The notes under the pieces are model-generated. The model was not told where the DNA came from. It searched no databases and worked only from the letters and a program-made list of their open reading frames with translations. A program made the translations under genes and the position numbers. 64,000 nucleotides of DNA from Macrostomum hystrix (lineage: Eukaryota; Animalia; Platyhelminthes), in assembly GCA_950097015.1 (NCBI GenBank), contig CATNEN010000010.1:3224001-3288000 (forward strand). The letters run 5' to 3'. Below, piece by piece: positions 16,883 through 64,000 of this stretch (within the stretch, counting starts at the first letter, position 1; every line of letters begins with the position of its first letter).

Positions 16883-16924
16883 ATATACTTTTTAGCAGCT
16901 GAATTTACAGCTTTTTAAAGCTAC

Positions 16925-17690
16925 AATGAACCCCCAGTTGACAATGATCCCCCCGTTGCTGATAATCTCCCAGTTGATGATGATCCCCAGTTGACAATGA
17001 TCCCCAGTTGACAATGATCCCCCAGTTGACAATGATCCCCCAGTTGACAATGATCCCCCAGTTGACAATGATCCCCCAGTTGACAATGAACCCCCAGTTG
17101 ACAATGATCCCACAGTTGACAATGAACCCCCAGTTGACAATGATCCCCCAGTTGATGATGATCCCCCAGTTGACAATGATCCCACAGTTGACAATGATCC
17201 CCAGTTGACAATGATCCCCCAGTTGACAAAGATCCTCCAGTTAACAATGATCCCCCAGTTGATGATGACTCCCCATTGATGATGATCCCCAGTTAACAAT
17301 GTTCCTCCAGTTGACAATGTTCCCCCAGTTGACAATGATCCCCCAGTTGATGATGATCACCCAGTTGACAATGAACCCCCAGTTGACAACGATCCACCAG
17401 TTGACAATGATCCCCCAGTTGACAATGATCCCACAGTTGACAATGATCCCCCAGTTGACAAAGATCCCCGAGTTGATGATAATCCCCCAGTTGATGATGA
17501 TCCCCCAGTTGACAATGATCCCAAGTTGACCATGATCCCCCATTTGATGATGATTCCCCAGTTGACAATTATCCCCCAGTTTACCATGATCCCCCAGTTG
17601 ACGATTATCCCCCAGTTTACCATGATCCCCATTTTGATGATGACTCCCCAGTTGACGTTGATTTTTCAAACGCTGGGTTAGCCAAGATTC
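16925..17690 (+). repeat. 18-bp minisatellite (GATCCCCCAGTTGACAAT)n
   Basis: Direct inspection. It explains the MIPQLT / GDHCQL ORFs. Confidence 0.95.
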
Positions 17691-18280
17691 AAACTCAGAT
17701 TTCGCCATGTTTTAAACCCTGGTGGGCTATGATTCAAACTCTCGTTTTGCCATGATTCAGACTCTGGTTGACTATGATTCAAACTCTGGTTGGCTATGAT
17801 TCAAACTCTGGTTTTGCCATGATTCAAGCTCTGGTTTAGCCATGATTCAAGCTCTGGTTTAGCCATGATTCAAACTCTGCTTTAGCCATGATTCAAGCTC
17901 TGGTTTAGCCATGATTCAAGCTCTGGTTTAGCCATGATTCAAACGCTGGGTTAGCCCTGATTGAAACTCTGGTTTAGCAATTTCAAACTCTGGTTTTGCC
18001 ATGATTCTAACTCTGGTTTAGCCGTGATTCAAACTCTGGTTGGCTATTATTCAAACTCTGGTTTTAAGCCATGATTCAAACGCTGGTTTAGCCATGATTC
18101 AAACTCTGGTTTAGCCATGATTTAAGCTCTGGTTTAGCCATGATTCAAACTCTGGTTTAGCCATGATTCAAGCTCTGGTTTAGCCATGATTCAAGCTCTG
18201 GTTTTGCCATGATTCAAGCTCTGGTTTAGCCATGATTCAAACTCTGGTTTAGCCATGATTCAAACTCTGGTTTTGCTATG
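17690..18280 (+). repeat. 23-bp minisatellite (GCCATGATTCAAACTCTGGTTTA)n
   Basis: Direct inspection. Confidence 0.95.
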
Positions 18281-19010
18281 CAGAAGTGAATTAAAAGTTT
18301 TCCCTTTATTTTCAAAATAAAATTTAAAAAATTGCTTTGCATCTATCACTACTGACTGACAATTCGTTTAAAATATTTTACGCAGTGCAGAGTCGAACCA
18401 AGGACACTTCGCCTAGCCTAGCCTAACCTATTCCTAGAGCCTGAACATTGGCAACTCCGACTTGGATTGGATTGCAAAAGGTAGCCTTATAAAATGAATT
18501 CTCAAAGTTCTGGCTTTGTACAAATAGAGTACACTTAGGTTCTGTCCAGATCGTGCAGGCTTCTAACTCAGTCAGCTAGGGGGTGTTGCGCAAGTTGCGA
18601 TGCAATTCCAATTCAGCGGCAGTCAGTTAAATTCTGACATGGGTGAGAAAAGCTGTGATGTAATCTATTTATATATTCGCACTGACTGTCTCGCCAGTGG
18701 GGTTGACACAGTGAAATTATTATCAGTGTACTCACTTTTAACAAAACTGGTCCTGATGCAATCATTTAAATTGGCAGTGGTATGCACGTTGACAAAACTG
18801 GCTCTGATGTAATGCATTAAAAATCCTATCTAAAACAGTTTTTCGAATATTTAATCCCCTTGGCAATGGAATTAAGCTTAATAAAAATACGTGTATATGT
18901 GTCCCCATATTTGGCATCTTTTAGTGAAGAAATGGTGAAAATCGGTTGAGCCGTTCGGGATAAAATCAATTACAACCAAGTAACAAACCATTTCATTTTT
19001 AGTATATTAG

Positions 19011-19064
19011 ACTAGCAAGTTTTGCCCCCCTTCGGGGAGCAGAAATACTTTTAATTCGTCTAGT
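19011..19064. mobile_element. Two overlapping Helitron-like 3' termini sharing one hairpin
   Basis: ACTAG-caagttttg-cc-CCCCTTCGGGG-agcagaaatacttttaattcgt-CTAGT. The left part equals 12162-12191 and the right part equals 16846-16882. Confidence 0.55.
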
Positions 19065-19087
19065 ATATACTTTTTAGCAGCTGAATT

Positions 19088-19695
19088 TACAGCTTTTTAA
19101 AGCTACAATGAACCCCCAGTTGACAATGAACCCCCAGTTGACAATGATCCCCCAGTTGACAATGATCCCCCAGTTGACAATGAACCCCCAGTTGACAACG
19201 ATCCCCCAGTTGACAATGATCCCCCAGTTGACAATGATCCCACAGTTGACAATGATCCCCCAGTTGACAAAGATCCCCCAGTTCACAATGATCCCCCAGT
19301 TGACAATGATCCCCCAGTTGATGATGATCCCACAGTTGATGATGATCCCCAGTTGACAATCATCCCCCAGTTGACAATTATCCCCCAGTTCACAATGATC
19401 CCCCAGTTGATGATGATCCCCCAGTTGATGATGATCCCCAGTTGATGATGATCACCCAGTTGACAATGATCCCCAAGTTGACCATGATCCCCCATTTGAT
19501 GATGATTCCTCAGTTGACAATTATCCCCCAGTTGACCATTTACCCCCTAGTTGACAATGATCCCCCAGTTCACAACGATCCCCCAGTTGACAAAGATCCT
19601 CCAGTTGACGATTATCCCCCAGTTCACCTTGATCCCCATTTTGATGATGACTCCCCAGTTGAAGTTGATTTTTCAAACGCTGGGTTAGCCAAGAT
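19088..19695 (+). repeat. Second copy of the 18-bp minisatellite block
   Basis: Same unit and same unique flanks as 16882-17690. Confidence 0.95.
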
Positions 19696-19698
19696 TTA

Positions 19699-20582
19699 CT
19701 CCCAGACGAGCGGACAGCTTCGATCATAGGGACACTCGTGCAAGTCTTCCGAGAGCGGGGCCCACCCTGGCAGCTGCTTCTGGACAACTCGGCGACCTTC
19801 CGCTCTGCCGAGGTGCGTGCATTCTGCGAAGCATGGGGAGTGCAACTCCTCTTCCGCTGCGCTCACCGGCCGTCGGCCAACGGGATAGTCGAGCGAAATC
19901 ATCGGACGATCAAGCGGATGGCATCCAGAACCGGCAAGGACGTGCTGGACATGGTATTCTGGTACAACATGGCTCCGAAGGATGGTACTCGGGAGTGCAG
20001 CGTGCCCAGCAGAATGCTCAGCACTTACGACTGGAAACCGCCCATGTTGGCTCTCCCCGAGGCCTCTGAGACACTGGAGTCAAACCCTGCCCTGCCGGTC
20101 GGAACGGAAGTGTTCGTCAAGCCGCCGGCAGTCAGGTGTACCGACGAGTGGCCAAGGGGGCGCGTGACAGGCCAGAGACAAGGGGCTACAGTGGAGGTCG
20201 ATGGGCTTCCCCGTCACATTGCTGACGTCCGGCCGGCCCCAGGCTCGCAACCACAGCCGCCTGGAGTAGAGCGAGCCGTTGAGCGGAACGGCGAACCCCG
20301 GCGGTCAAGTCGCGAGAGGTCGGCACCAGTCCGCTACGAAGCTTAATCTCTTTTGATCTTGAGATCAGGGAGAAATGTTGTACTCGTACTTAAACTATCT
20401 TTGTTGTTAGTTGACCGATGCCGCTGCTTAAGCAGCCATAGACTGTTCTGACCGATGCCGCTGCTTAAGCAGCCATAGACTTTTCTGTACCCCACTTAAC
20501 AAGTGCGCGAGGCCCAGCCCCTCGCAAATATATTCACCTTCTTGCGTTCCCTTCTGCTTCTCGCTCTAGCGACTTAGTTACA
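19699..20582 (+). mobile_element. Ty3/gypsy LTR retrotransposon 3' fragment: integrase core and C-terminus, PPT and 3' LTR (20376-20582)
   Basis: LLDNSATF and NGIVERNHRTIKRM rve motifs in 19738-20346. The purine tract AGGGAGAAA is followed by TG at 20376, and the LTR ends TTACA at 20582. The element is 5'-truncated. Confidence 0.85.
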
Positions 20583-49129: not shown

Positions 49130-49825
49130 CTTAACGTTTGAAATACAAGAATCCAAAGGGAATTCCCTGTGGGATTCCCCATAGACATAGTTTAACGATG
49201 TTCATTAAAACCCTTGCTCAGCGTTGTTAAATGGTATATTGTTAATCACGCTAACATTAATTAATTGCATGGGCTGAATAAATCGGAACAGCTACCATAG
49301 ACTAACGCCCGTTGCGATTGCGGGGAGGTACATACCATACTTCCGATTAGTTTTGTTGTCTATGGGCATATATACGCTCAAGGCGACTCATTTATTGACA
49401 AAGTCTTTTCTCAGGCTTCACATTTCACATAGAAAATTCAGATCGCACATTTTAAAAGGCTTGATCAACCAAAAATCGCACGTTGTATCTACCTGCCAAT
49501 TCGACTAACTGGGATTCGAAGAGTCCGAATCATAAGATCGTTGATTTAAAATATTCGGAATTGGAATCAAAGCTGCATGCAATTTTTTTGTTTGAGTTGA
49601 GACTCGAAGATTTGGGAACTACGAGTATAATAGTTGTATTCGAAGGAATGGGACTCAAGAATTCTAAGATGAGACTGGTAAACATTTTTCGGATTTAATA
49701 TTGAATTATAGACCATGTAGTGTTTTGAAATATGACGATTTGGGCTCATCGAACAAACGGGATTAAATGGGTGTGAGATGATTAGATTTTAGATATATGA
49801 AGAAAGTGGGATCAAGTGGTGGGGA

Positions 49826-52800
49826 TTCGAGTATTTGGGATTCGAGTAGTTGGGATTAGAGTAGTCGGGATTCGAGTATTTGGGATTTGAGTAGTTGGGA
49901 TTCGAGTATTTGGGATTTGAGTAGTTGGGATTCGAGTATTTGGGATTCGAGTAGTCGGGATTCGAGTATTTGGGATTCGAGTAGTTGGGATTAGAGTAGT
50001 CGGGATTCGAGTATTTGGGATTTGAGTAGTTGGGATTCGAGTATTTGGGATTTGAGTAGTTGGGATTCGAGTATTTGGGATTCGAGTAGTTGGGATTAGA
50101 GTAGTCGGGATTCGAGTATTTGGGATTTGAGTAGTTGGGATTCGAGTATTTGGGATTCGAGTAGTGGGGATTCGAGTAGTGGGGATTCGAGTATTTGGGA
50201 TTTGAGTAGTGGGGATTCGAGCAGTGGGGATTCGAGTAGTTGGGATTCGAGTAGTTGGGATTCGAGTAGTTGGGATTCGAGTAGTTGGGATTCGAGTAGT
50301 TGGGATTCGAGTATTTGGGATTTGAGTATTTGGGATTCGAGTAGTTGGGATTTGAGTAGTTGGGATTTGAGTAGTTGGGATTAGAGTAGTCGGGATTCGA
50401 GTATTTGGGATTTGAGTAGTTGGGATTCGAGTATTTGGGATTAGAGTAGTCGGGATTCGAGTATTTGGGATTCGAGTATTTGGGATTTGAGTAGTTGGGA
50501 TTCGAGTAGTTGGGATTCGAGTAGTTAAGATTCGAGCAGTGTGGATTCGAGCAGTGGGGATTCGAGCAGTGGGGATTCGAGCAGTGTGGATTCGAGCAGT
50601 GGGGATTCGAGTAGTTGGGATTCGAGTATTTGGGATCGAGTATTTGGGATTCGAGTAGTGGGGATTCGAGCAGTGGGGATTTGAGTAGTTGGGATCGAGT
50701 ATTTGTGATTCGAGTAGTTGGGATTCGAGTAGTTGGGATTCGAGTATTGGGGATTCGAGTAGTGGGGATTCGAGTAGTTAAGATTCGAGCAGTGGGGATT
50801 CGAGCAGTGGGGATTCGAGCAGTGGGGATTCGAGCAGTGGGGTTTCGAGTATTTAAGATTCGAGCAGTGGGGATTCGAGCAGTGGGGATTCGAGTAGTGG
50901 GGATTCGAGTATTTGGGATCGAGTATTTAAGATTCGAGTAGTGGGGATTCGAGCAGTGGGGATTCGAGTAGTGGGGATTCGAGTAGTGGGGATTCGAGTA
51001 GTTAAGATTCGAGCAGTGGGGATTCGAGCAGTTAAGATTCGAGCAGTGGGGATTCGAGTAGTTGGGATTCGAGTATTGGGGATTCGAGTAGTGGGGATTC
51101 GAGTAGTTAAGATTCGAGCAGTGGGGATTCGAGCAGTGGGGATTCGAGCAGTGGGGATTCGAGCAGTGGGGTTTCGAGTATTTAAGATTCGAGCAGTGGG
51201 GATTCGAGCAGTGGGGATTCGAGTAGTGGGGATTCGAGTAGTGGGGATTCGAGTAGTTAAGATTCGAGCAGTGGGGATTCGAGTAGTTAAGATTCGAGTA
51301 GTGGGGATTCGAGTAGTTAAGATTCGAGCAGTGGGGATTCGAGCAGTGGGGATTCGAGCAGTGGGGATTCGAGCAGTGGGGTTTCGAGTATTTAAGATTC
51401 GAGCAGTGGGGATTCGAGCAGTGGGGATTCGAGTAGTGGGGATTCGAGTATTTGGGATCGAGTATTTAAGATTCGAGCAGTGGGGATTCGAGTAGTGGGG
51501 ATTCGAGTAGTGGGGATTCGAGTAGTGGGGATTCGAGTAGTTAAGATTCGAGCAGTGGGGATTCGAGCAGTGGGGATTCGAGTAGTGGGGATTCGAGTAG
51601 TTGGGATTCGAGTATTTGGGATTCGAGTAGTGGGGATTCGAGTATTTAAGATTCGAGTAGTGGGGATTCGAGTAGTGGGGATTCGAGTAGTGGGGATTCG
51701 AGTAGTGGGGATTCGAGTAGTGGGGATTCGAGTATTTAAGATTCGAGCAGTGGGGATTCGAGCAGTGGGGATTCGAGTAGTGGGGATTCGAGTAGTGGGG
51801 ATTCGAGTATTTGGGATTCGAGCAGTGGGGATTCGAGTAGTGGGGATTCGAGTATTTGGGATTCGAGTATTTGGGACTCGAGTATTCGGGATTCGGGTAG
51901 TTGGGATTTGAGTAGTTGGACTCGAGTATTTGGGATTCGAGTAGTGGGGATTCGAGTAGTGGGGATTCGAGTAGTGGGGATTCGAGTAGTGGGGATTCGA
52001 GTATTTGGGATTTGAGTAGTTGGGATTCGAGTATTTGGGATTAGAGTAGTTGGGATTTGAGTAGTTGGGATTCGAGTAGTTGGGATTAGAGTAGTCGGGA
52101 TTCGAGTATTTGGGATTTGAGTAGTTGGGATTCGAGTATTTGGGATTAGAGTAGTCGGGATTCGAGTATTTGGGATTCGAGTATTTGGGATTTGAGTAGT
52201 TGGGATTCGAGTATTTGGGATTAGAGTAGTCGGGATTCGAGTATTTGGGATTCGAGTATTTGGGATTTGAGTAGTTGGGATTCGAGTATTTGGGATTAGA
52301 GTAGTCGGGATTCGAGTATTTGGGATTAGAGTAGTTGGGATTCGAGTATTTGGGATTAGAGTAGTTGGGATTTGAGTAGTTGGGATTCGAGTAGTTGGGA
52401 TTAGAGTAGTCGGGATTCGAGTATTTGGGATTTGAGTAGTTGGGATTCGAGTATTTGGGATTAGAGTAGTCGGGATTCGAGTATTTGGGATTCGAGTATT
52501 TGGGATTTGAGTAGTTGGGATTCGAGTATTTGGGATTAGAGTAGTCGGGATTCGAGTATTTGGGATTCGAGTATTTGGGATTAGAGTAGTCGGGATTTGA
52601 GTAGTTGGGATTCGAGTATTTGGGATTTGAGTAGTTGGGATTCGAGTATTTGGGATTAGAGTAGTCGGGATTCGAGTATTTGGGATTCGAGTATTTGGGA
52701 TTTGAGTAGTTGGGATTCGAGTATTTGGGATTTGAGTAGTTGGGATTCGAGTATTTGGGATTTGAGTAGTTGGGATTCGAGTATTTGGGATTAGAGTAGT

Positions 52801-55517
52801 CGGGATTCGAGTAGTTGGGATTCGAGTATTTGGGATTAGAGTAGTCGGGATTCGAGTATTTGGGATTCGAGTATTTGGGATTTGAGTAGTTGGGATTCGA
52901 GTAGTTGGGATTCGAGTAGTTAAGATTCGAGCAGTGTGGATTCGAGCAGTGGGGATTCGAGCAGTGGGGATTCGAGTAGTTGGGATTCGAGTATTTGGGA
53001 TCGAGTATTTGGGATTCGAGTAGTGGGGATTCGAGCAGTGGGGATTTGAGTAGTTGGGATCGAGTATTTGGGATTCGAGTAGTTGGGATTCGAGTAGTTG
53101 GGATTCGAGTATTGGGGATTCGAGTAGTGGGGATTCGAGTAGTTAAGATTCGAGCAGTGGGGATTCGAGCAGTGGGGATTCGAGCAGTGGGGATTCGAGC
53201 AGTGGGGATTCGAGTATTTAAGATTCGAGCAGTGGGGATTCGAGCAGTGGGGATTCGAGTAGTGGGGATTCGAGTATTTAAGATTCGAGTAGTGGGGATT
53301 CGAGCAGTGGGGATTCGAGCAGTGGGGATTCGAGTAGTGGGGATTCGAGTAGTGGGGATTCGAGTAGTGGGGATTCGAGTAGTTAAGATTCGAGCAGTGG
53401 GGATTCGAGCAGTGGGGATTCGAGTAGTGGGGATTCGAGTAGTTGGGATTCGAGTATTTGGGATTCGAGTAGTGGGGATTCGAGTATTTAAGATTCGAGT
53501 AGTGGGGATTCGAGTAGTGGGGATTCGAGTAGTGGGGATTCGAGTAGTGGGGATTCGAGTAGTGGGGATTCGAGTATTTAAGATTCGAGCAGTGGGGATT
53601 CGAGCAGTGGGGATTCGAGTAGTGGGGATTCGAGTAGTTGGGATTCGAGTATTTGGGATTCGAGTAGTGGGGATTCGAGTATTTAAGATTCGAGTAGTGG
53701 GGATTCGAGTAGTGGGGATTCGAGTAGTTGGGATTCGAGTATTTGGGATTCGAGTAGTTGGGATTCGAGTATTTGGGATTCGAGTAGTTGGGATTCGAGT
53801 ATTTGGGATTCGAGTAGTTGGGATTCGAGTAGTGGGGATTCGAGTAGTTGGGATTCGAGTATTTGGGATTCGAGTAGTGGGGATTCGAGTATTTAAGATT
53901 CGAGTAGTGGGGATTCGAGTAGTGGGGATTCGAGTAGTGGGGATTCGAGTAGTGGGGATTCGAGTAGTGGGGATTCGAGTAGTGGGGATTCGAGTATTTA
54001 AGATTCGAGCAGTGGGGATTCGAGCAGTGGGGATTCGAGTAGTGGGGATTCGAGTAGTGGGGATTCGAGTATTTGGGATTCGAGCAGTGGGGATTCGAGT
54101 AGTGGGGATTCGAGTATTTGGGATTCGAGTATTTGGGACTCGAGTATTCGGGATTCGGGTAGTTGGGATTTGAGTAGTTGGACTCGAGTATTTGGGATTC
54201 GAGTAGTGGGGATTCGAGTAGTGGGGATTCGAGTAGTGGGGATTCGAGTAGTGGGGATTCGAGCAGTGGGGATTGGAGCAGTGGGGATTCGAGTAGTGGG
54301 GATTCGAGTAGTGGGGATTCGAGTAGTGGGGATTCGAGTAGTGGGGATTCGAGTAGTGGGGATTCGAGTATTGGGGATTCGAGTAGTGGGGATTCGAGTA
54401 GTGGGGATTCGAGTATTGGGGATTCGAGTAGTGGGGATTCGAGTAGTGGGGATTCGAGTAGTTGGGATTCGAGTAGTGGGGATTCGAGCAGTGGGGATTC
54501 GAGTAGTGGGGATTCGAGTAGTGGGGATTCGAGTATTGGGGATTCGAGTAGTGGGGATTCGAGTAGTGGGGATTCGAGTAGTTGGGATTCGAGTAGTGGG
54601 GATTCGAGCAGTGGGGATTCGAGTAGTGGGGATTCGAGTAGTTGGGATTCGAGTAGTGGGGATTCGAGTAGTGGGGATTCGAGTAGTGGGGATTCGAGCA
54701 GTGGGGATTCGAGTAGTGGGGATTCGAGTAGTGGGGATTCGAGTAGTGGGGATTCGAGTAGTGGGGATTCGAGTAGTGGGGATTCGAGTAGTGGGGATTC
54801 GAGTAGTGGGGATTCGAGTAGTTGGGATTCGAGTATTTGGGATTCGAGTAGTGGGGATTCGAGTATTTGGACTCGAGTATTTGGGATTCGAGTATTTGGG
54901 ATTCGAGTATTTGGGATTTGAGTATTTGGGACTCGAGTATTCGGGATTCGAGTAGTTGGGATTCGAGTAGTTGGGATTTGAGTAGTTGGTATTCGAGTAT
55001 TTGGGATTTGAGTAGTTGGGATTCGAGTAGTTGGGATTCGAGTAGTGGGGATTCGAGTAGTGGGGATTCGAGTAGTGGGGATTCGAGTAGTGGGGATTCG
55101 AGTAGTGGGGATTCGAGCAGTGGGGATTCGAGTAGTGGGGATTCGAGTAGTGGGGATTCGAGCAGTGGGGATTCTAGTAGTGGGGATTCGAGTAGTGGGG
55201 ATTCGAGTAGTGGGGATTCGAGTAGTTGGGATTCGAGTAGTGGGGATTCGAGTAGTGGGGATTCGAGCAGTGGGGATTCTAGTAGTGGGGATTCGAGTAG
55301 TGGGGATTCGAGTAGTGGGGATTCGAGTATTTAAGATTCGAGTAGTTGGGATTCGAGTAGTTGGGATTCGAGTATTGGGATTCGAGTATTGGGATTCGAG
55401 TATTGGGGATTCGAGTAGTGGGGATTCGAGTTTGTAGGGACTCGAGTATTTGGGACTCGAGTATTTGGGAATCCAATAGTTGGGATTCGAGCAGTTGGGA
55501 TTCGAATACTTGGGATT
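49826..55517 (+). repeat. 5.7-kb 15-bp minisatellite (GGGATTCGAGTAGT(T/G))n with variant blocks
   Basis: Direct inspection. It explains the IRVVG / DSSSG ORFs. Confidence 0.97.
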
Positions 55518-55586
55518 CGAAGCCTTATCTTATCCATCAAGCAAGCCTCACTAATGCTCTAATGTTTGCACAAGTTCGCCACGCGG

Positions 55587-58500
55587 TCAGTCGGCCTCAC
55601 TCCGGCCCAGTCCTTGCCCTACCCGGATTCTCTGCCCCGGTGAGGCGGTGAAATCAAAACTTGCCGGCGCCTCAAACACCAGCACAACTGTGCTGCCCAG
55701 ATTGAACTGGCCGAACGGCTGGCCCTTGGCCAGGCGCGGACTTGGCCGCAGGCGCCTGTCGGCGAAGCCGCTGCGCGCGGCAGCCCGCCCTGCCTGGTTG
55801 GTTGCCAGATCCTGCGTTTCGGGGGAAGAGGTGGGAGTTGCGATTAATTGCGATAAATTTTACTGAGTTGAAAACAACTGATCCGTTAAACCTTTTTTCC
55901 GTTAGAAACAAATTTCCTTTAAAAAGCACCTTCTAGAAATCTGTTCATTACAAAGGAAAAAATGGAAGACTAAAGTGCTCTTGGAAAAGTTGAGGGCTGC
56001 AGCTAATATCAGTGGCTACACATAAACTATTCATGCATACAAGATGACCACCAAGTCACCCTTGAATGACAACTTCTAAAAACACTAAAATTTCCGCTTC
56101 TTAAAAACCATAGAACGATCTCTTCTAAAAGCCCTAGAATGACAACTCCTAAAAGCCCTAAAATGACCACCCCTGAAAGCCCTAGAATGACCACTCCTAA
56201 AAGCCCTAGAATGACCACTTCTAAAAGCCCTAGAATGACCACTCCTAAAAGCCCTAGAATGACCACTTCTAAAAGCCCTAGAATGACCACTTCTAAAAGC
56301 CCTAGAATGACCAATCGTAGACACCCAAGAAGGACACCCGGTCAGTCTCAAAGTGGTCTCACTCACCGGGTCGCAGGTGACGCTGATAGAGCCGACCCCG
56401 GTGGCGCCGACGGCGGTCATGCAAAGCCAGCCGTGGCGCCAGACGCCGTCAAAGACGGCTCGCTCGTTGGTGCAGAACAGGCCGGGGACGGTGGCAGCCA
56501 CGGGAGGCGCTACAGACAGCAGGCGGCCGGGGAAGTGGCGCCTGGCTCGAACCAGCCAGTGAGCGGGGCGAGTGGAACCGGTGATAATCACCTGGCGCCA
56601 GGTAAATTACGCAATGATAAAGCCGCGTGCCGGTCAAGCGGCGTAACTTGGCCAGGTAGGCCTGGTCATTAGCCTGGTCGTCAGCGTCTTGGTTGCTATG
56701 CGGCTGCTGCGGTTGCTGGGAGAATTCGCCGATTGGCAAAGGGCCGAGAAAATCCTGGAATTGAGTTTTTTGCACTGCGAGCAAGCATTCTGAGGCCTGG
56801 CGCACCCAATGAGGTGAAAAGGGGGCCGAGTCGCACAAAAAATTCCTGAGTTCTCTCCCACGGCGAGGCCAAATGTGGAACAATGGTCGAGAGATAGCAA
56901 GCCGGGCAAACCCTTCCTGACGAAGAGAAGGTCAGGGCCTGCACACAGCCCAGTGGAAGTATTTAGAGGCAGCGCTTACCTGCAGCCTGTAGGTGATGCC
57001 CTTCACCTGCTCCAAGTGTCCGGCCCGCACCCGACCCAGACTGAGCACTTGGCCATCTGCTGGAGACACCAGCTCGCTAGCCGGGCACACCGGCCGCAGG
57101 CCAGGTCGCAGGCTGCGGGCGAAGAACTCGGCCAGGGTGGCAAAGTCGACCAGCTCCTGGCAGCTGGCCTCGGCCAGGTCGCAGTGGCAGAGCCGGCTAT
57201 ACAGCCGGTAGAGGGGCGCGCGAGCTGCGAGTGGCAGCGGACGGCGGTGGCAGCGGCCCCAGGCGCGAGAGAGCGCGTTCAGCGGCAGCGGCAGCCGGCT
57301 GTAGGCCTGCGTGGGAATTTCGACGGGGCTGCGAGGCTGAGAAAAGGCGAAGATGGACATACTGACAGATCAAGGAATGTGATCGAAGCATTTAAGAGAA
57401 CCTGCAAAGGGATTGGAACATCCGACGGGATATGGAATGTGCTTGGAACATCCGACAAGACATGGAATGTGCTTGGAACATTCGACAAGACATGGAATGT
57501 GCTTGGAACATTCGACAAGACATGGAATGTGCTTGGAACATCTGACACGTCGGAATATCCGACAGGACATGGAATGTGGTTTCAACTTTAAACAGCCAGA
57601 CTTGATGTCATCGTTGTGGCCCGATCAATTGCTCATTTCTAAGTTTTGAATGAGTTAGAACAATCTTGCAATCAACTTTTTGGTAAATTTCAGCCATCGA
57701 TTGCCCAAATTGCGATTGTCAAGCTTGTGAGTTTCTCTTGTCGCATTCTGTTTGTCGAGTAAATAAGCGAATAAGTGCAACGTTATAAGTACATCAGATT
57801 AGCCTATTTTGTGATCTCTCGCTGGCCAGAAAAAAATCATATGACCTCACGCTTGACCATAATTGTAATGCCTAATTCTCTTATCAGTCCTGATACAGCC
57901 ACTGTTGTGAGTTATTTATTACCAAATACACAGCCAGATATTTGAAAAGATTCATTTGTTGACCTCTTCCGGAACTGGTCCTTTAACCGGTTGGCCAAAC
58001 AGGCAAAACCGGTTGGACAGTCCCGCCTGCGAATTCAAAGAAAGCCCTCAGCAACAGGGCGCAGATTGAGATTGCAATCTTTTGACACCTGATTGGACGT
58101 GTGTCAGGTGCTTTTCTGGTCGAAATCTCCAACCAAGTGCTTCTGCACCGCTTGCTCACCATGCTCTAAAATTAGTTCTCAAATATGGTTTTGCGTTTCA
58201 TTTTAATCTGCCAGTTTAAAAACGAGTTTCTTACTGACCCGCGCACCTCTGAGTCTTCTGACCTCGATTTCGATCCTCAAAATTTCTAAATAATCTGAAG
58301 CTGGTGAAAGCTGCAGAACTTTCTGAACCTTCTGAACCTCCTGAACCTTCTGAACCTTCTGAAGCTCCTGAACCTTCTGAACCTTCTGAAGCTCCTGAAC
58401 CTTCTGATCCTTCAAAACCTTTCGAACTTCTGAACCTTCTGAACCTTTTAAACCTCCTGAACCTTCTGAAGCTCCTGAACCTTCTGAACCTTCTGAACCT

Positions 58501-59373: not shown

Positions 59374-59701
59374 GACAAATTTACAAAACTCTTTAGATTT
59401 CCTTCTTTCCTTTTGCTAAATCTCTCTCCGTACTCCCTCATTACGCCAATATATTTTAGCACTTAAAGAATAGCAAAAATGTAACCCAATGTCTTATCTG
59501 AACTGACTGAGATTTTTTCCTGGCTCGAGTCGAATCAGAATCAACAGGGGGGGGGCATTTTTCATGAAGGCTCAAAGTATTTTTGTGTGAAACGTTACGA
59601 TTGAGGCAGATTATTATAACTTCCAAAGTTCTTTAGAGGTCGGGAGTTTGAATCTCATCCGAAGGGGTGCAATCTGTGTCCACAAGCAAGACATCTAATT
59701 C

Positions 59702-59990
59702 GGGATGTGAGTGGCAGAGCGGTTAATGTGGCAGCCTTTCGCACCAAGGTCCCTGAGCTTGATTGCGTGGCGAGACCCCATTCATATTCGGGGCGCAGCC
59801 GCGGAGACAAGGCTTGTGTGCTAGTCGGCAATCTACGCCCTTGAGGGCCAACCGACGATGAGAAAGTCAGGGCAGATATACACTCTCACTGTAAGCGTGT
59901 GCCTGCGTACAGTATCTGTGTGCGTGTGTGTTCAGGAGTAAGCAAAATGAGTGTCACCAAGTTATGTGCCATTGCCCGCAGCCCTGCCAC
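59702..59990 (+). mobile_element. tRNA-derived SINE
   Basis: A-box-like GTGGCAGAGCGGTTAA and a degenerate B box GGTCCCTGAGCTTGATT. The body GCCCTTGAGGGCCAACC..GACGATGAGAAAGTCAGGGC is shared with other copies. Confidence 0.75.
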
Positions 59991-60511
59991 AATTTTTGTT
60001 ATAATATGATTGCTTCAGTTCACCCAGCTGAGAAATGGGTAATGGCGGCCGACCCGGTACATGGACTGAACAGCTGTACAAATCATTTGGAAGCGCCGGC
60101 TGTGCCTCTGGTTGCTTGCACATCTTGCCCAACTTGACTAGGTTTAATGCAGCTTTAGTCTCAAACTAAATTCGTACAAAGCAACATGCACATAATTTAC
60201 ACTGAGTGAACCTCATTTCTGGACAAGTCTGGCGCGCAGGCACGTTGTCCATCAGTTTATTTTCGCGTCCAAAAGCTAGCATTACTATTCCGATTGCGTA
60301 ATATTCCTGATTGCAGAGAGATCGCGGGTGTCATTTCTTGTCCCGGGCGCTCAACTTCACCGAACAAAAAAATTGGCTGAAACAATAGACATTAGCTGAA
60401 CTGCACGATGGGCCCCAGTGGGACAAGCCAAAAAAGCCACTATTTATATGCGGCTACGACGGAGCGCTTTTCGCAAGACCAACCTGGAGTTCTCTCTCGA
60501 TTCAGAAAGCA

Positions 60512-61315
60512 ATGGCTTCAGCAACCCGAACTGCCCACGAGTTTCTGCTTCTAGCAGCGGCGGTAGCTGTGCTTTTCCTCGCGGCCGTCTCGGCCAACCC
60601 AGCTCAGACCGACGGCCTGACAGGCAAATGGGGCTCCGGCAGCCACGACTCGAGCTCAGGTGGTAACAAAGGCAGCGACTGGCGAAAGCACGGAGATCGC
60701 TGGAACAACGATTGGGTAGACAACTGGAGACATCACGGCGATCGATGGAACAAGGACGGCGATCGATGGAACAAGGACGGCGATCGATGGAACAAGGACG
60801 GCGATCGATGGAACAAGGACGGCGATCGATGGAACAAGGACGGCGATCGATGGAACAAGGACGGCGATCGATGGAACAAGGACGGCGATCGATGGAACAA
60901 GGACGGCGATCGATGGAACAAGGACGGCGATCGATGGAACAAGGACGGCGATCGACAGAACAAGGAGGGCGGTCGATGGAAAAAGGACGGCGGTCGATGG
61001 AAAAAGGACGGTGATCGATGGAACAAGGACGTTGGTCGATGGAACAAGGACGGCGGTCGATGGAACAAGGACGGCGATCGATGGAACAAGGACGGCGATC
61101 GATGGAACAAGGACGGCGATCGATGGAACAAGGGCGGCGATCGATGGAACAATGACGGCGGTCGGTGGAACAAAGACGGTGGTCGATGGAACAAGGACGG
61201 TGGTCGATGGAACAAGGACGTTGGTCGATGGAACAAGGACGTTGGTCGATGGAACAAGGACGTTGGTCGATGGAACAAGGACGTTGGTCGATGGAACAAG
61301 CATGAAGGCAAGTGA
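60512..61315 (+). CDS. Secreted-type 267-aa protein with about 27 WNKDG(D/G)R-type heptads
   Basis: ATG ORF with a hydrophobic leader (FLLLAAAVAVLFLAAVSA-NP) and a non-repetitive N-terminus in frame with the 21-bp repeats. It ends WNKHEGK*. TATTTATA lies at 60441. Confidence 0.85.
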   Translation: MASATRTAHEFLLLAAAVAVLFLAAVSANPAQTDGLTGKWGSGSHDSSSGGNKGSDWRKHGDRWNNDWVDNWRHHGDRWNKDGDRWNKDGDRWNKDGDRWNKDGDRWNKDGDRWNKDGDRWNKDGDRWNKDGDRWNKDGDRWNKDGDRQNKEGGRWKKDGGRWKKDGDRWNKDVGRWNKDGGRWNKDGDRWNKDGDRWNKDGDRWNKGGDRWNNDGGRWNKDGGRWNKDGGRWNKDVGRWNKDVGRWNKDVGRWNKDVGRWNKHEGK

Positions 61316-61734
61316 ACTTACAGCGCGTCGAAAGAAGTCGAAATGCTTTAGAACAAATTACATCATTAGTGACTTTTTAGTGTCATTGCAAACCATTAGA
61401 CCAACAATTTTTCAATATAAATCTATGTGCGTCTTGAAGAAAAGTAGCACTGATGGTTGTACGAGCACTACTTTTTTATTAAATATATTGAAATAGCCAA
61501 TTTGTCTCGCTACTCGTACCCGCTAATGTCATTTGTGTGGGTCGAGTGTACGTACTCGTACGTTTTTAGTCTAACAAAAAGTCTAGCTTCAACCGAACCA
61601 GGGTTAAACTCGACGAGACAATGTTGTCAACTGTTGAATTTTGTTTGGTAAATAAAGGTTAGGGTTAAGATTACCTCGAGTTTGAAAAAATGAAGGGAGT
61701 GATACAAGGTACCTGAAGCTTCTGTCTATGACTA

Positions 61735-62015
61735 CAAGGTCCCTGAGCTCGATTCCGCCCTGAAGTCACATTCATTCCAGATGGCTTGGGGGCTTGTCCT
61801 ACAATTTACGCCCTTAAGGGCCAACCTCCAACGCGCAGTTAGTGTTCACTGCCTGACGATGAGAAATTCGGGGCTGATCTACACTGCACCTGCTTGAGCA
61901 TGTGTGTATAGTACCTGTGTGAGTGTATGCTCAGGAGTCAGCGGAAGGAGCCGAATCGCCTGTCACTGGCTGCGGCTCGACTGTCACCAAGTGATGTGCC
62001 AGTGCCCAAAGCACT
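61735..62015 (+). mobile_element. 5'-truncated SINE copy
   Basis: It starts at the B-box-like GGTCCCTGAGCTCGATTCC, and its body matches the other copies. Confidence 0.75.
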
Positions 62016-62425
62016 CCTGCAACCAGACCGCCGAGCTAGGTGAACCGCTGGTAGCAGGCGAGCTTGGTCCTCTGCCCCGACTGTGCCGCGTGAATTTTGG
62101 CCGTCACAGTCAGCACCTTTCTCGTCTCCAGCGTGTTGAAAACTTCAGGTTAAACAGAAAAGGACTGGAGGCAACAGGTTGTCGGCGTTTACGCCAGCTC
62201 AGGCGCAGGCTTGTGGGCCGTGCCTCATCCATAGAGCCGAGCCTCTTGGGGTTGGCCCTTTGGGACCGTGCCGATAAGCACTGCCATCACTGAATGGCAA
62301 TTCTGAGAACCTATTACAGCAAGGTGATGAACTGCTGAACTTCTAATTCCTGATTCGCAACTGTGCAGCCTGGTATGCTCAACACTTTTAAGGAGGTTCG
62401 CCAGGATTACTGCACTCTGCGCCCT

Positions 62426-62783
62426 AATGATAATAATAATTGCAGGAGGGCTGCGGGCAATGGCACATCATTTAGTGACCCTCAGCCAGCGAGGAGGCAA
62501 TCCCGCCCATTTCACTGCCTCCTGAGCACACACGCACACAGATACTGTACGCAGGCACACGCTCACACTGGTTTATACATCTGCCCTGACTTTCTCATCG
62601 TCAGGCAGTTTGCACTTCACTGTGCCTTGGAGGTTGGCTCTCAAGGGCGTGAATTGCACGACAAGCCCCCAAGCCTTCTCTACGCGGCTGCGCCCCAAAT
62701 AAATGTGGCCTCGCCGTGGAATCGAAACTCAGGGACCGTGGTGCGAGAGGCAAACGCGTGAACCGCTCTGCCACCGACCCCCC
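62426..62783 (-). mobile_element. Full-length tRNA-derived SINE flanked by a 14-bp direct repeat
   Basis: The minus strand has GGTGGCAGAGCGGTT (A box) and GGTCCCTGAGTTTCGATTCC (B box). GCACTCTGCGCCCT lies at 62412-62425 and 62784-62797 (candidate TSD). Confidence 0.8.
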
Positions 62784-63330
62784 GCACTCTGCGCCCTGAG
62801 GGCAGACAATATCATTGGCTCTAGCTCTGCCTGCGCGCTGATAAGCGATCCTCCTCTAAACCCGGTCCTACCGTGAGCTCAAGAGCTCAAGAGCAATCTC
62901 AGGGCTTGCCAGACTCTCTTCTTCATTTTTTTTATCTTTTTAGTCTGCTTAATCGCTGCAACTGTTTCATAACTCCGACAAATATGCAAATTCAAACAAA
63001 TTGGGTTGGTAACGAACAAAAAGTGTCAAATTTACCGCTACCAATCAATTGCCATGATTAGTGTATTTAAATATGCCCAATAGTAAACAATGTGTAAAAC
63101 TCCATAAGTACTATGCGCCACTGACAGCTTTTGTTGCTAAAATTTATTGCACATTATAGTACATAATCTATGATAATGTCTAACAGGTTAAATTTATCCA
63201 AAAATTAATTGAGGCGTAAACAAACTACTGAAACTGCTAATAAAATAAGAAGTGTAGTTCATATGAGACAAGTGATCTTCGATCTATCCAAGATAACTAG
63301 AAAAATTCATGCAGTGTGCGTCTAGTACAG

Positions 63331-64000
63331 CTACAACCAGTAGCCGATTTTATTCCAGCGACCACGGCCCTTGCTCCTCCGACCTGCGCGACCTTTGATG
63401 TTCCAGTAGCCCCCGCCATTAATGGCGGTGTTTCTACCGTTGTTCCAGGTGTTTCCGCCGTTGTTCCAGGAGTTCACGTCATTATTCCAGGTGTTTCCTC
63501 CGTTGTTCCAAGAGCCCGCGGCAGTATTCCAGGTGTTTCCTCCGTTGTTCCAAGAGCCCGCGGCAGTATTCCAGGTGTTTCCTCCGTTGTTCCAAGAGCC
63601 CGCGGCTGTATTCCAGGTGTTTCCTCCGTTGTTCCAAGAGTTCACGTCATTATTCCAGGTGTTTCCTCCGTTGTTCCAAGAACCCGCGGCAGTATTCCAG
63701 GTGTTTCCTCCGTTGTTCCAAGAGCCCGCGGCAGTATTCCAGGTGTTTCCTCCGTTGTTCCAAGAGTTCACGTCATTATTCCAGGTGTTTCCTCCGTTGT
63801 TCCAAGAACCCGCGGCAGTATTCCAGGTGTTTCCTCCGTTGTTCAGGGCATTGCCAGTATTTCTCCAGACCATTTTTCCATTTGTCCTGGTCCAGCTATT
63901 GTCCAAATCAGAATTTGAGGCCATGCTGCTTCTCCGGTAATCGTTTCTCAACGGAGTTGAATCAACAGCGACCAGGATCAGCGCCAGTGCTGCCACTTGA
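63331..64000 (-). CDS. Secreted-type protein (5' end outside the window) with about 20 WNNGGNT / WNTAAGS / WNNDVNS heptads and a basic tail
   Basis: The frame is open to the window edge, with a hydrophobic stretch [15 protein letters not shown]. The 21-bp units alternate in a 42-bp higher order. It ends [21 protein letters not shown]. Confidence 0.8.

Follow-up and report, generated by a model that had tools for sequence, protein, structure and literature searches.

The last 3.5 kb of a 64,000-nucleotide stretch of the Macrostomum hystrix genome (contig C10, positions 3,224,001-3,288,000; hereafter the window, whose own numbering is used throughout) carry two putative genes, here named A and B, that lie tail to tail 2,015 bp apart and are both single-exon, i.e. 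intronless. A preliminary description of this DNA had presented them as an adjacent convergent pair, each with a leader peptide and with repeats anchored on TGG AA(C/T), and the open reading frames (ORFs), their orientation and the repeats were all recovered in the sequence. Gene A (60512-61315, + strand, 267 amino acids [aa]) lies wholly inside the window; an amendment to that description concerns gene B (63331-64035, - strand, 234 aa), whose ATG, in an ACCATGG context, falls 35 nt outside the window end. The features of the two genes are the following.

60441-60449, + strand: TATA-like box TATTTATAT of gene A, 71 nt upstream of the ATG
60512-60595, + strand: predicted signal peptide of gene A, 28 aa, ATG context GCAATGG
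60596-60724, + strand: unique spacer of gene A, 43 aa, with irregular Trp spacing (…GSDW RKHGDRW NNDW VDNW)
60725-61294, + strand: heptad array of gene A, ca. 27 x 21 bp, consensus TGG AAC AAG GAC GGC GAT CGA (W-N-K-D-G-D-R)
61295-61315, + strand: last unit of gene A, WNKHEGK, and TGA stop
61651-61656, + strand: AATAAA of gene A, a consensus match and candidate poly(A) signal 335 nt past the stop
63143-63148, - strand: AATAAA of gene B, a consensus match and candidate poly(A) signal 182 nt past the stop
63331-63426, - strand: stop (TAG) and basic C-terminal tail of gene B
63427-63868, - strand: heptad array of gene B, ca. 20 heptads in 42-bp double units forming a higher-order pattern
63869-64000, - strand: unique spacer and most of the predicted signal peptide of gene B, the ORF extending to 64035
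64129-64137, just outside the window, - strand: TATA-like box TATTTATAT of gene B, 102 nt upstream of the ATG

The leader of gene A (MASATRTAHEFLLLAAAVAVLFLAAVSA) is built around the hydrophobic core FLLLAAAVAVLFLAAV and is predicted to be cut before NP, with VSA preceding the cut. The array behind it comprises the edge unit WRHHGDR and variant blocks of WNKDGGR and WNKDVGR. Tandem Repeats Finder (TRF) resolves it into 27.0 copies of a 21-bp unit (60735-61300, 95% matches), 13 array units are identical at the DNA level and, among 28 in-register heptads, 27 start with TGG and 25 continue with AAC. An ATTAAA is also present on the 3' side of this gene, at 61478-61483. In gene B, a signal peptide of 26 aa with a predicted cut before TP is followed by a spacer of 30 residues and then by an array of 14-aa double units, in which WNNGGNT is paired with either WNTAAGS or WNNDVNS; WRNTGNA and LNNGGNT form its edge units, and 21 of its 23 in-register heptads open with TGG and then AAC or AAT. 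The 21-bp period formerly assigned to both genes holds for A, whereas the best TRF fit for B is a 42-bp unit equal to two heptads (9.6 copies, 91% matches), the 21-bp fit reaching only 56% matches. Both proteins nevertheless combine a leader that fits signal-peptide rules by inspection with at least five consecutive W-N-x5 heptads, of which 25 were counted in A and 21 in B.

Several features at the ends of the two reading frames are those expected of genes. When read by hand rules (n/h/c layout), both leaders display a charged n-region, a hydrophobic core of 14-16 residues and small residues at positions -3/-1, and both ATGs are in a strong Kozak context. The 9-mer TATTTATAT that is common to both genes has nine occurrences on both strands of the 64-kb window, which corresponds to ca. 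one per 14 kb of strand and thus to ca. 0.008 expected per 120-nt upstream stretch. Both frames cross unique sequence at the two ends of their arrays and stop soon after them. As a comparison set, ca. 45 other W-heptad loci were inspected among the matches obtained in the same genome with the full-length A and B proteins (more than 100 matches each, those inspected being 21-bp minisatellites). Nearly all of these loci are bare 21-bp minisatellites without ATG or leader and often with stops in the Trp frame, and none associates an ATG, a signal peptide and a unique leader, save one unrelated precursor with SPFWKKR units.

This last locus (C38:26158500-26162700, + strand, ORF from position 1362 of that stretch, 416 aa) is a secreted polyprotein-type gene in which the signal peptide MTTAERQLSVALMLVTVMLLGIVSAVSS is followed by a short acidic leader and by ca. 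50 tandem (S/A)PFW units, each with a KKR. Such a layout suggests a precursor from which SPFW or APFW tetrapeptides would be released, either as neuropeptides or as antimicrobial peptides. A signal peptide, a short leader, dozens of identical short Trp units and a single exon are all traits that it has in common with A and B, which differ from polyprotein precursors in having no basic cleavage sites between units: periodic sites of this kind occur in neither protein, dibasic pairs numbering three in A and two in B.

A near-identical gene pair is found in inverted orientation on contig C33 (5,044,869-5,048,454). That it might represent extra members of a family was considered and rejected: the entire 64-kb window is colinear, in inverted orientation, with C33 5,044,869-5,101,885, the identity in unique DNA being 99.5-100%, and residual separately assembled haplotypes have been reported for the M. 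hystrix assembly (PMC10468722). The C33 pair therefore corresponds to alleles and not to added members. Between the two contigs, unique DNA differs by 0.2-0.5% and minisatellites differ in length, and what is found in the window should thus be met again on C33. The C33 array of A is 105 nt shorter, i.e. five heptads fewer, and that of B is 168 nt longer, i.e. four 14-aa double units more, so that these alleles show arrays which are still changing length in frame. Array identity amounts to 95% within A and 91% within B, compared with ca. 57% between the two. Because the units are uniform within each array and the haplotypes differ by whole units, the independent homogenisation of the two repeats that the preliminary description had proposed is well supported.

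The predicted mature products differ in their chemistry, one charged and the other polar, as had been noticed earlier. Mature A (239 aa) contains 19% Asp, 18% Gly and 13% each of Lys, Arg, Asn and Trp; 46% of its residues are charged, for a net charge of +14 and an isoelectric point (pI) of 9.8. Mature B (208 aa) has 27% Asn, 18% Gly and 12% Trp with only 10% charged residues (net +9, pI 11.2) and is an Asn/Gly/Thr/Ser-rich polar chain. Both are Cys-free products of 23-29 kDa in which Trp accounts for 10-13% of the residues and recurs at a constant interval of 7 residues, and no W-x-x-W (the C-mannosylation motif) occurs in either mature sequence. Three positions after W, A has Asp or Gly, while B has Gly, Ala or Asp; neither protein shows the hydrophobic a/d pattern of coiled coils, W being the sole hydrophobic position of the heptad. 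AlphaFold2, run on single sequences with no alignment, predicts two long helices in A (residues 54-152 and 167-264; mean predicted local distance difference test [pLDDT] 70, predicted template modelling score [pTM] 0.29), and the A heptad places Asp-Arg/Lys pairs at i+3 and i+4, the pLDDT of the helices being 70-90 in this single-sequence prediction. For B, no confident fold was obtained (mean pLDDT 48, pTM 0.22), and the short strands predicted at 7-residue spacing are too poor to use. Protein A would be a well-mixed polyampholyte with R-W-N-K cores, existing either as a disordered chain or as a salt-bridged helical rod with a Trp stripe.

No relative of either protein was detected in databases. 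Pfam gave nothing above threshold, and a word-index search of 5.8 billion proteins with B, A and the first 90 residues of A returned nothing relevant, the only match for B being a retroelement Gag with chance W-N words, which was dismissed. The ESM Atlas yielded no usable match, and PDB, searched by sequence, no meaningful match for A or B. When B was used as the query of a HMMER scan covering 1.84 billion representatives, 179 matches were obtained, which are low-complexity singletons with W at every seventh residue from a bacterial metagenome-assembled genome, a moth (insects) and metagenome assemblies; coverage of the B leader or tail was found in none of them, and we regard them as unrelated to B and convergent. 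The proteins are thus indeed undescribed as far as these collections go, and the homologues in other species that had been envisaged were not found, the word searches giving none and the HMMER scan giving only unrelated singletons, with no other Macrostomum genome available to search. The expectation of a wider WN-heptad family with more members beyond the window was not borne out either: the N-terminal unique parts of A and B have no paralogue in the genome besides the C33 allele, the other W-heptad loci inspected are non-coding apart from the precursor on C38, and the motif W-N-[K/N]-[D/G]-G at 42-nt spacing, sought across 220 Mb, gives 43 matches (0 in the control) that all belong to the A and B arrays and their alleles. 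A and B are an orphan pair, so far found only in Macrostomum hystrix.

The closest look-alike is P0123 (an unannotated protein of 308 aa, from a 1.65-Mb contig of an ENA assembly), which likewise has a signal peptide, W-N-N heptads and an Asn-rich, basic composition. It consists of ca. 11 P-W-N-N-N-Q-R/G heptads followed by P-F-N-N-Q-G units, forms a singleton cluster and matches weakly after composition correction (E 0.002-0.02 in one-to-one BLASTP), over the repeats only. This likeness most likely reflects convergence, P0123 being an apparently independent secreted W-N heptad protein of another eukaryote.

The DNA around the two genes is rich in repeats. Three copies of a ca. 300-nt element are present near them.

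59701-60005, + strand: third copy of the ca. 300-nt SINE-like element, upstream of gene A
61735-62022, + strand: copy of the ca. 300-nt tRNA-like SINE, in the intergenic spacer and outside both genes
62427-62784, - strand: inverted copy of the same SINE-like element, in the intergenic spacer

This element starts with tRNA-like A and B boxes and is a probable short interspersed nuclear element (SINE), for which at least 50 copies with 70-84% identity were found genome-wide. The idea that the two intergenic copies mark an inverted duplication was rejected, as the pair is no more alike than unrelated copies are: the inverted copy has ca. 74-89% similarity to other copies, and copies elsewhere in the genome are equally close. 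The 3' untranslated regions (UTRs) of A and B, taken from stop codon to SINE, do not align. These elements are therefore uninformative on duplication. Rfam and a tRNA scan of the window returned nothing.

Other arrays occur in the same region. A minisatellite whose 30-bp unit contains two TGGAAY cores is located 3 kb upstream of gene A (57413-57547), on the strand opposite to phosphatidylserine decarboxylase exons. Just past the window (64450-65390), ca. 36 copies of a 26-bp minisatellite (GAAGCATTTCACCGGGAAAGTGTACT) start 400 nt upstream of the gene B promoter. A 5.7-kb array at 49807-55520, which has an extreme GC skew (+0.5 to +0.7), repeats a 15-bp unit (TGGGATTCGAGTAGT) 381 times; several of its frames are open, without gene features. 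Finally, an 18-bp unit, which reads NWGIIV in one frame, forms arrays at 16923-17656 and 19105-19662 that flank a 23-bp array (17665-18280), and the whole (16923-19662) adjoins an integrase-like ORF at 19738-20346. This arrangement may represent repeats internal to a transposable element.

The explanation that we favour, with a probability of roughly 0.5, treats A and B as real intronless secreted paralogues whose arrays were rebuilt separately and whose products would be Trp-based components of a gland secretion. The two genes would probably have arisen by an old inverted duplication, after which each paralogue would have kept the same plan, running from a TATA box and a signal peptide through a short spacer to an array with Trp at every seventh residue and a short tail. 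The arrays would then have been rebuilt separately by unequal exchange or slippage, a process that appears to be ongoing because the haplotypes differ in unit number. The products would most likely be gland-secretion components, such as mucus, adhesive, rhabdite, egg-shell or seminal material, in which evenly spaced Trp "stickers" could provide the weak multivalent contacts that condense or gel the secretion; in A, the Arg and Lys flanking each Trp may act as cation-pi partners. This last part, in which A and B act as Trp stickers gelling a gland product, is put forward only tentatively.

That A and B are genuine genes for secreted proteins is, in our estimate, quite probable, although a number of observations weigh against it. 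Within the arrays no frame is interrupted on either strand, so that an ORF there proves nothing and the evidence rests on the ends. The exact A and B proteins are absent from a collection of 15 billion proteins, and the word-index search returned no fragment of the A N-terminus. The unit variants of gene A show ca. 3 synonymous to 7 non-synonymous changes, a ratio matching neutrality; the haplotypes, with one substitution in unique coding sequence, are too similar for a selection test, the ratio of non-synonymous to synonymous rates (dN/dS) being without power. This neutral-looking pattern and the lack of homologues or of any record in protein collections would also be expected if the two were not genes at all but merely two of many 21-bp minisatellites that happen to be in frame behind an ATG and a hydrophobic stretch, or at most young, noisy and functionless proto-genes. 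Such arrays do abound in the genome, with ca. 20 in the window alone, and the reversed control gives 722 matches where three TGGAAY at 21-bp spacing give 3,073, the latter mostly located in non-coding arrays that have stops in the frame concerned; protein B even scores 83.5 bits against some non-coding arrays and 64 bits against A. We nevertheless hold this explanation to be unlikely, since A and B each combine a Kozak ATG, a canonical signal peptide and a poly(A) signal with a leader and a tail that are unique and in frame, and both have the same TATA-like 9-mer at the distance of a promoter; this set of features was seen in none of the background arrays inspected. Protein B furthermore appears to avoid N-glycosylation sequons, its mature form having 57 Asn and 36 Ser/Thr but zero N-x-S/T compared with 9.8 expected (P = 0.025, unit-consistent shuffle), which fits a chain passing through the endoplasmic reticulum; P rises to 0.14 when the shuffle is restricted to the three main unit types, and this too is to be counted on the negative side.

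The relatedness of the two genes can also be questioned. They may be unrelated secreted genes that each acquired or expanded a TGGAAY-cored 21-bp minisatellite, in which case the W-N grammar would reflect a repeat bias at the DNA level and neither descent nor selection on the protein. As already claimed, there is little DNA similarity between them: 12 of the 21 bases agree between the consensus units, including all of the first eight, and the flanks share nothing. Beyond TGGAAY only 6 of 15 bases are shared, protein alignment after the signal peptide is no better than that of shuffles (P = 0.31), and blastn between promoters, unique coding parts and 3' regions returns chance words only (all E > 0.05), so that promoters, UTRs, leaders and tails alike are without similarity. 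The ca. 4-fold excess of TGGAAY over the reversed control suggests that the minisatellites of this genome may favour this core at the DNA level, one such array lying 3 kb upstream of gene A, and, as these arrays are common in non-coding DNA, the W-N anchor alone is weak evidence of relatedness. The motif W-N-[K/N]-[D/G]-G, for its part, was derived post hoc from A and B themselves and therefore shows uniqueness and not significance. Independent origin is still, to our mind, even less likely than the absence of genes. If signal-peptide W-heptad genes are rare, as the three seen among ca. 45 loci would indicate, it is very unlikely that two would lie 2 kb apart by chance. The pair has in common the TATTTATAT box, an edge unit of the form W-R-x-x-G-[D/N]-x with which both arrays open (WRHHGDR and WRNTGNA, 13 of 21 bases shared) and the above motif, which is unique to it in 220 Mb. 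Descent of A and B as diverged members of one family, as proposed before, is thus made plausible by adjacency and architecture but is not backed by any significant sequence match outside the heptads, and on this balance we consider paralogy probable, with somewhat more doubt than the status of the two as genes. As for function, A and B might instead be defence proteins, i.e. cationic Trp/Arg-rich chains acting on microbial membranes or cut into antimicrobial peptides. Antimicrobial activity is known for R/W-rich peptides such as indolicidin and (RW)n, both A and B are net cationic, Cys-free and Trp-rich, and an R-W pair occurs in every A unit. This we find improbable: the 46 Asp of A cancel most of its charge, the B array is almost uncharged, and neither protein has regular dibasic or processing sites, the (S/A)PFW-KKR precursor of the same genome showing what true sites look like.

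Returning to the proposed role in gland secretions, several known systems offer points of comparison. In M. lignano, many gland-specific secreted proteins are without homologues or domains (PMC5977470). The repeat proteins of invertebrate glands (mussel foot, sandcastle-worm cement, flatworm adhesive and seminal-fluid proteins) have, like A and B, a signal peptide, short tandem repeats, aromatic and cationic residues, fast repeat turnover and little homology outside their lineage; there is no sequence relation, and as aromatic residue A and B have Trp, placed strictly every 7 residues, instead of tyrosine or 3,4-dihydroxyphenylalanine (Tyr/DOPA). The prion-like sticker-and-spacer domains of FUS and hnRNPA1 also have evenly distributed aromatics, with polar Asn/Gly/Ser/Thr spacers as in B or Arg/Lys neighbours as in A, but they are found inside cells, have Tyr/Phe as aromatics and do not consist of exact tandem repeats, whereas A and B have predicted signal peptides. 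Even aromatics in polar spacers are a design that favours multivalent weak association. ER/K single alpha-helices and coiled coils have in common with A a 7-residue period, alternating charges and i/i+3 and i/i+4 Asp-Arg/Lys pairs; A differs from them in having a single hydrophobic heptad position (W), 'd' being Asp, and in the predominance of Gly/Asn/Asp over Glu/Lys/Arg. Beta-solenoid proteins with turns of 7 or 14 residues, such as grass ice-binding proteins, are another known design, with an Asn ladder. A and B are orphan, predicted secreted tandem-repeat proteins of a kind already known, with an unusual Trp-heptad design.

The preliminary description had further suggested that the two products may co-assemble. 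A polycation/polyanion pair was rejected because both chains are net cationic (+14 and +9), and any co-assembly would therefore have to proceed via Trp contacts or via a third, anionic partner. A more specific proposal, for which we see little likelihood, is that the strict 7-residue Trp spacing is itself functional. One possibility here is that A is a helical rod binding polysaccharide or crystalline surfaces, its putative Trp stripe having a repeat of ca. 10.5 Å, which equals the repeat length of cellulose and chitin chains; the other is a two-component extracellular condensate in which A and B would be joined by pi-pi and cation-pi Trp contacts. With regard to the rod, half of the residues of A are Gly, Asn or Asp, and the helix may be an artefact of prediction; this speaks against such a structure, and the predicted helix is therefore treated as unproven.

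If expressed, A and B would count among the natural secreted proteins richest in Trp, with 10-13% Trp in perfectly even spacing, and would make it possible to examine, in a simple natural setting, how the identity and the spacing of stickers govern the assembly of extracellular material. They would also illustrate minisatellite dynamics reshaping coding sequence, in two neighbours that have the same scaffold and opposite chemistries. Should the rod or the condensate prove true, the pair would represent a new class of animal secreted material that is Trp-based and not Tyr/DOPA-based.

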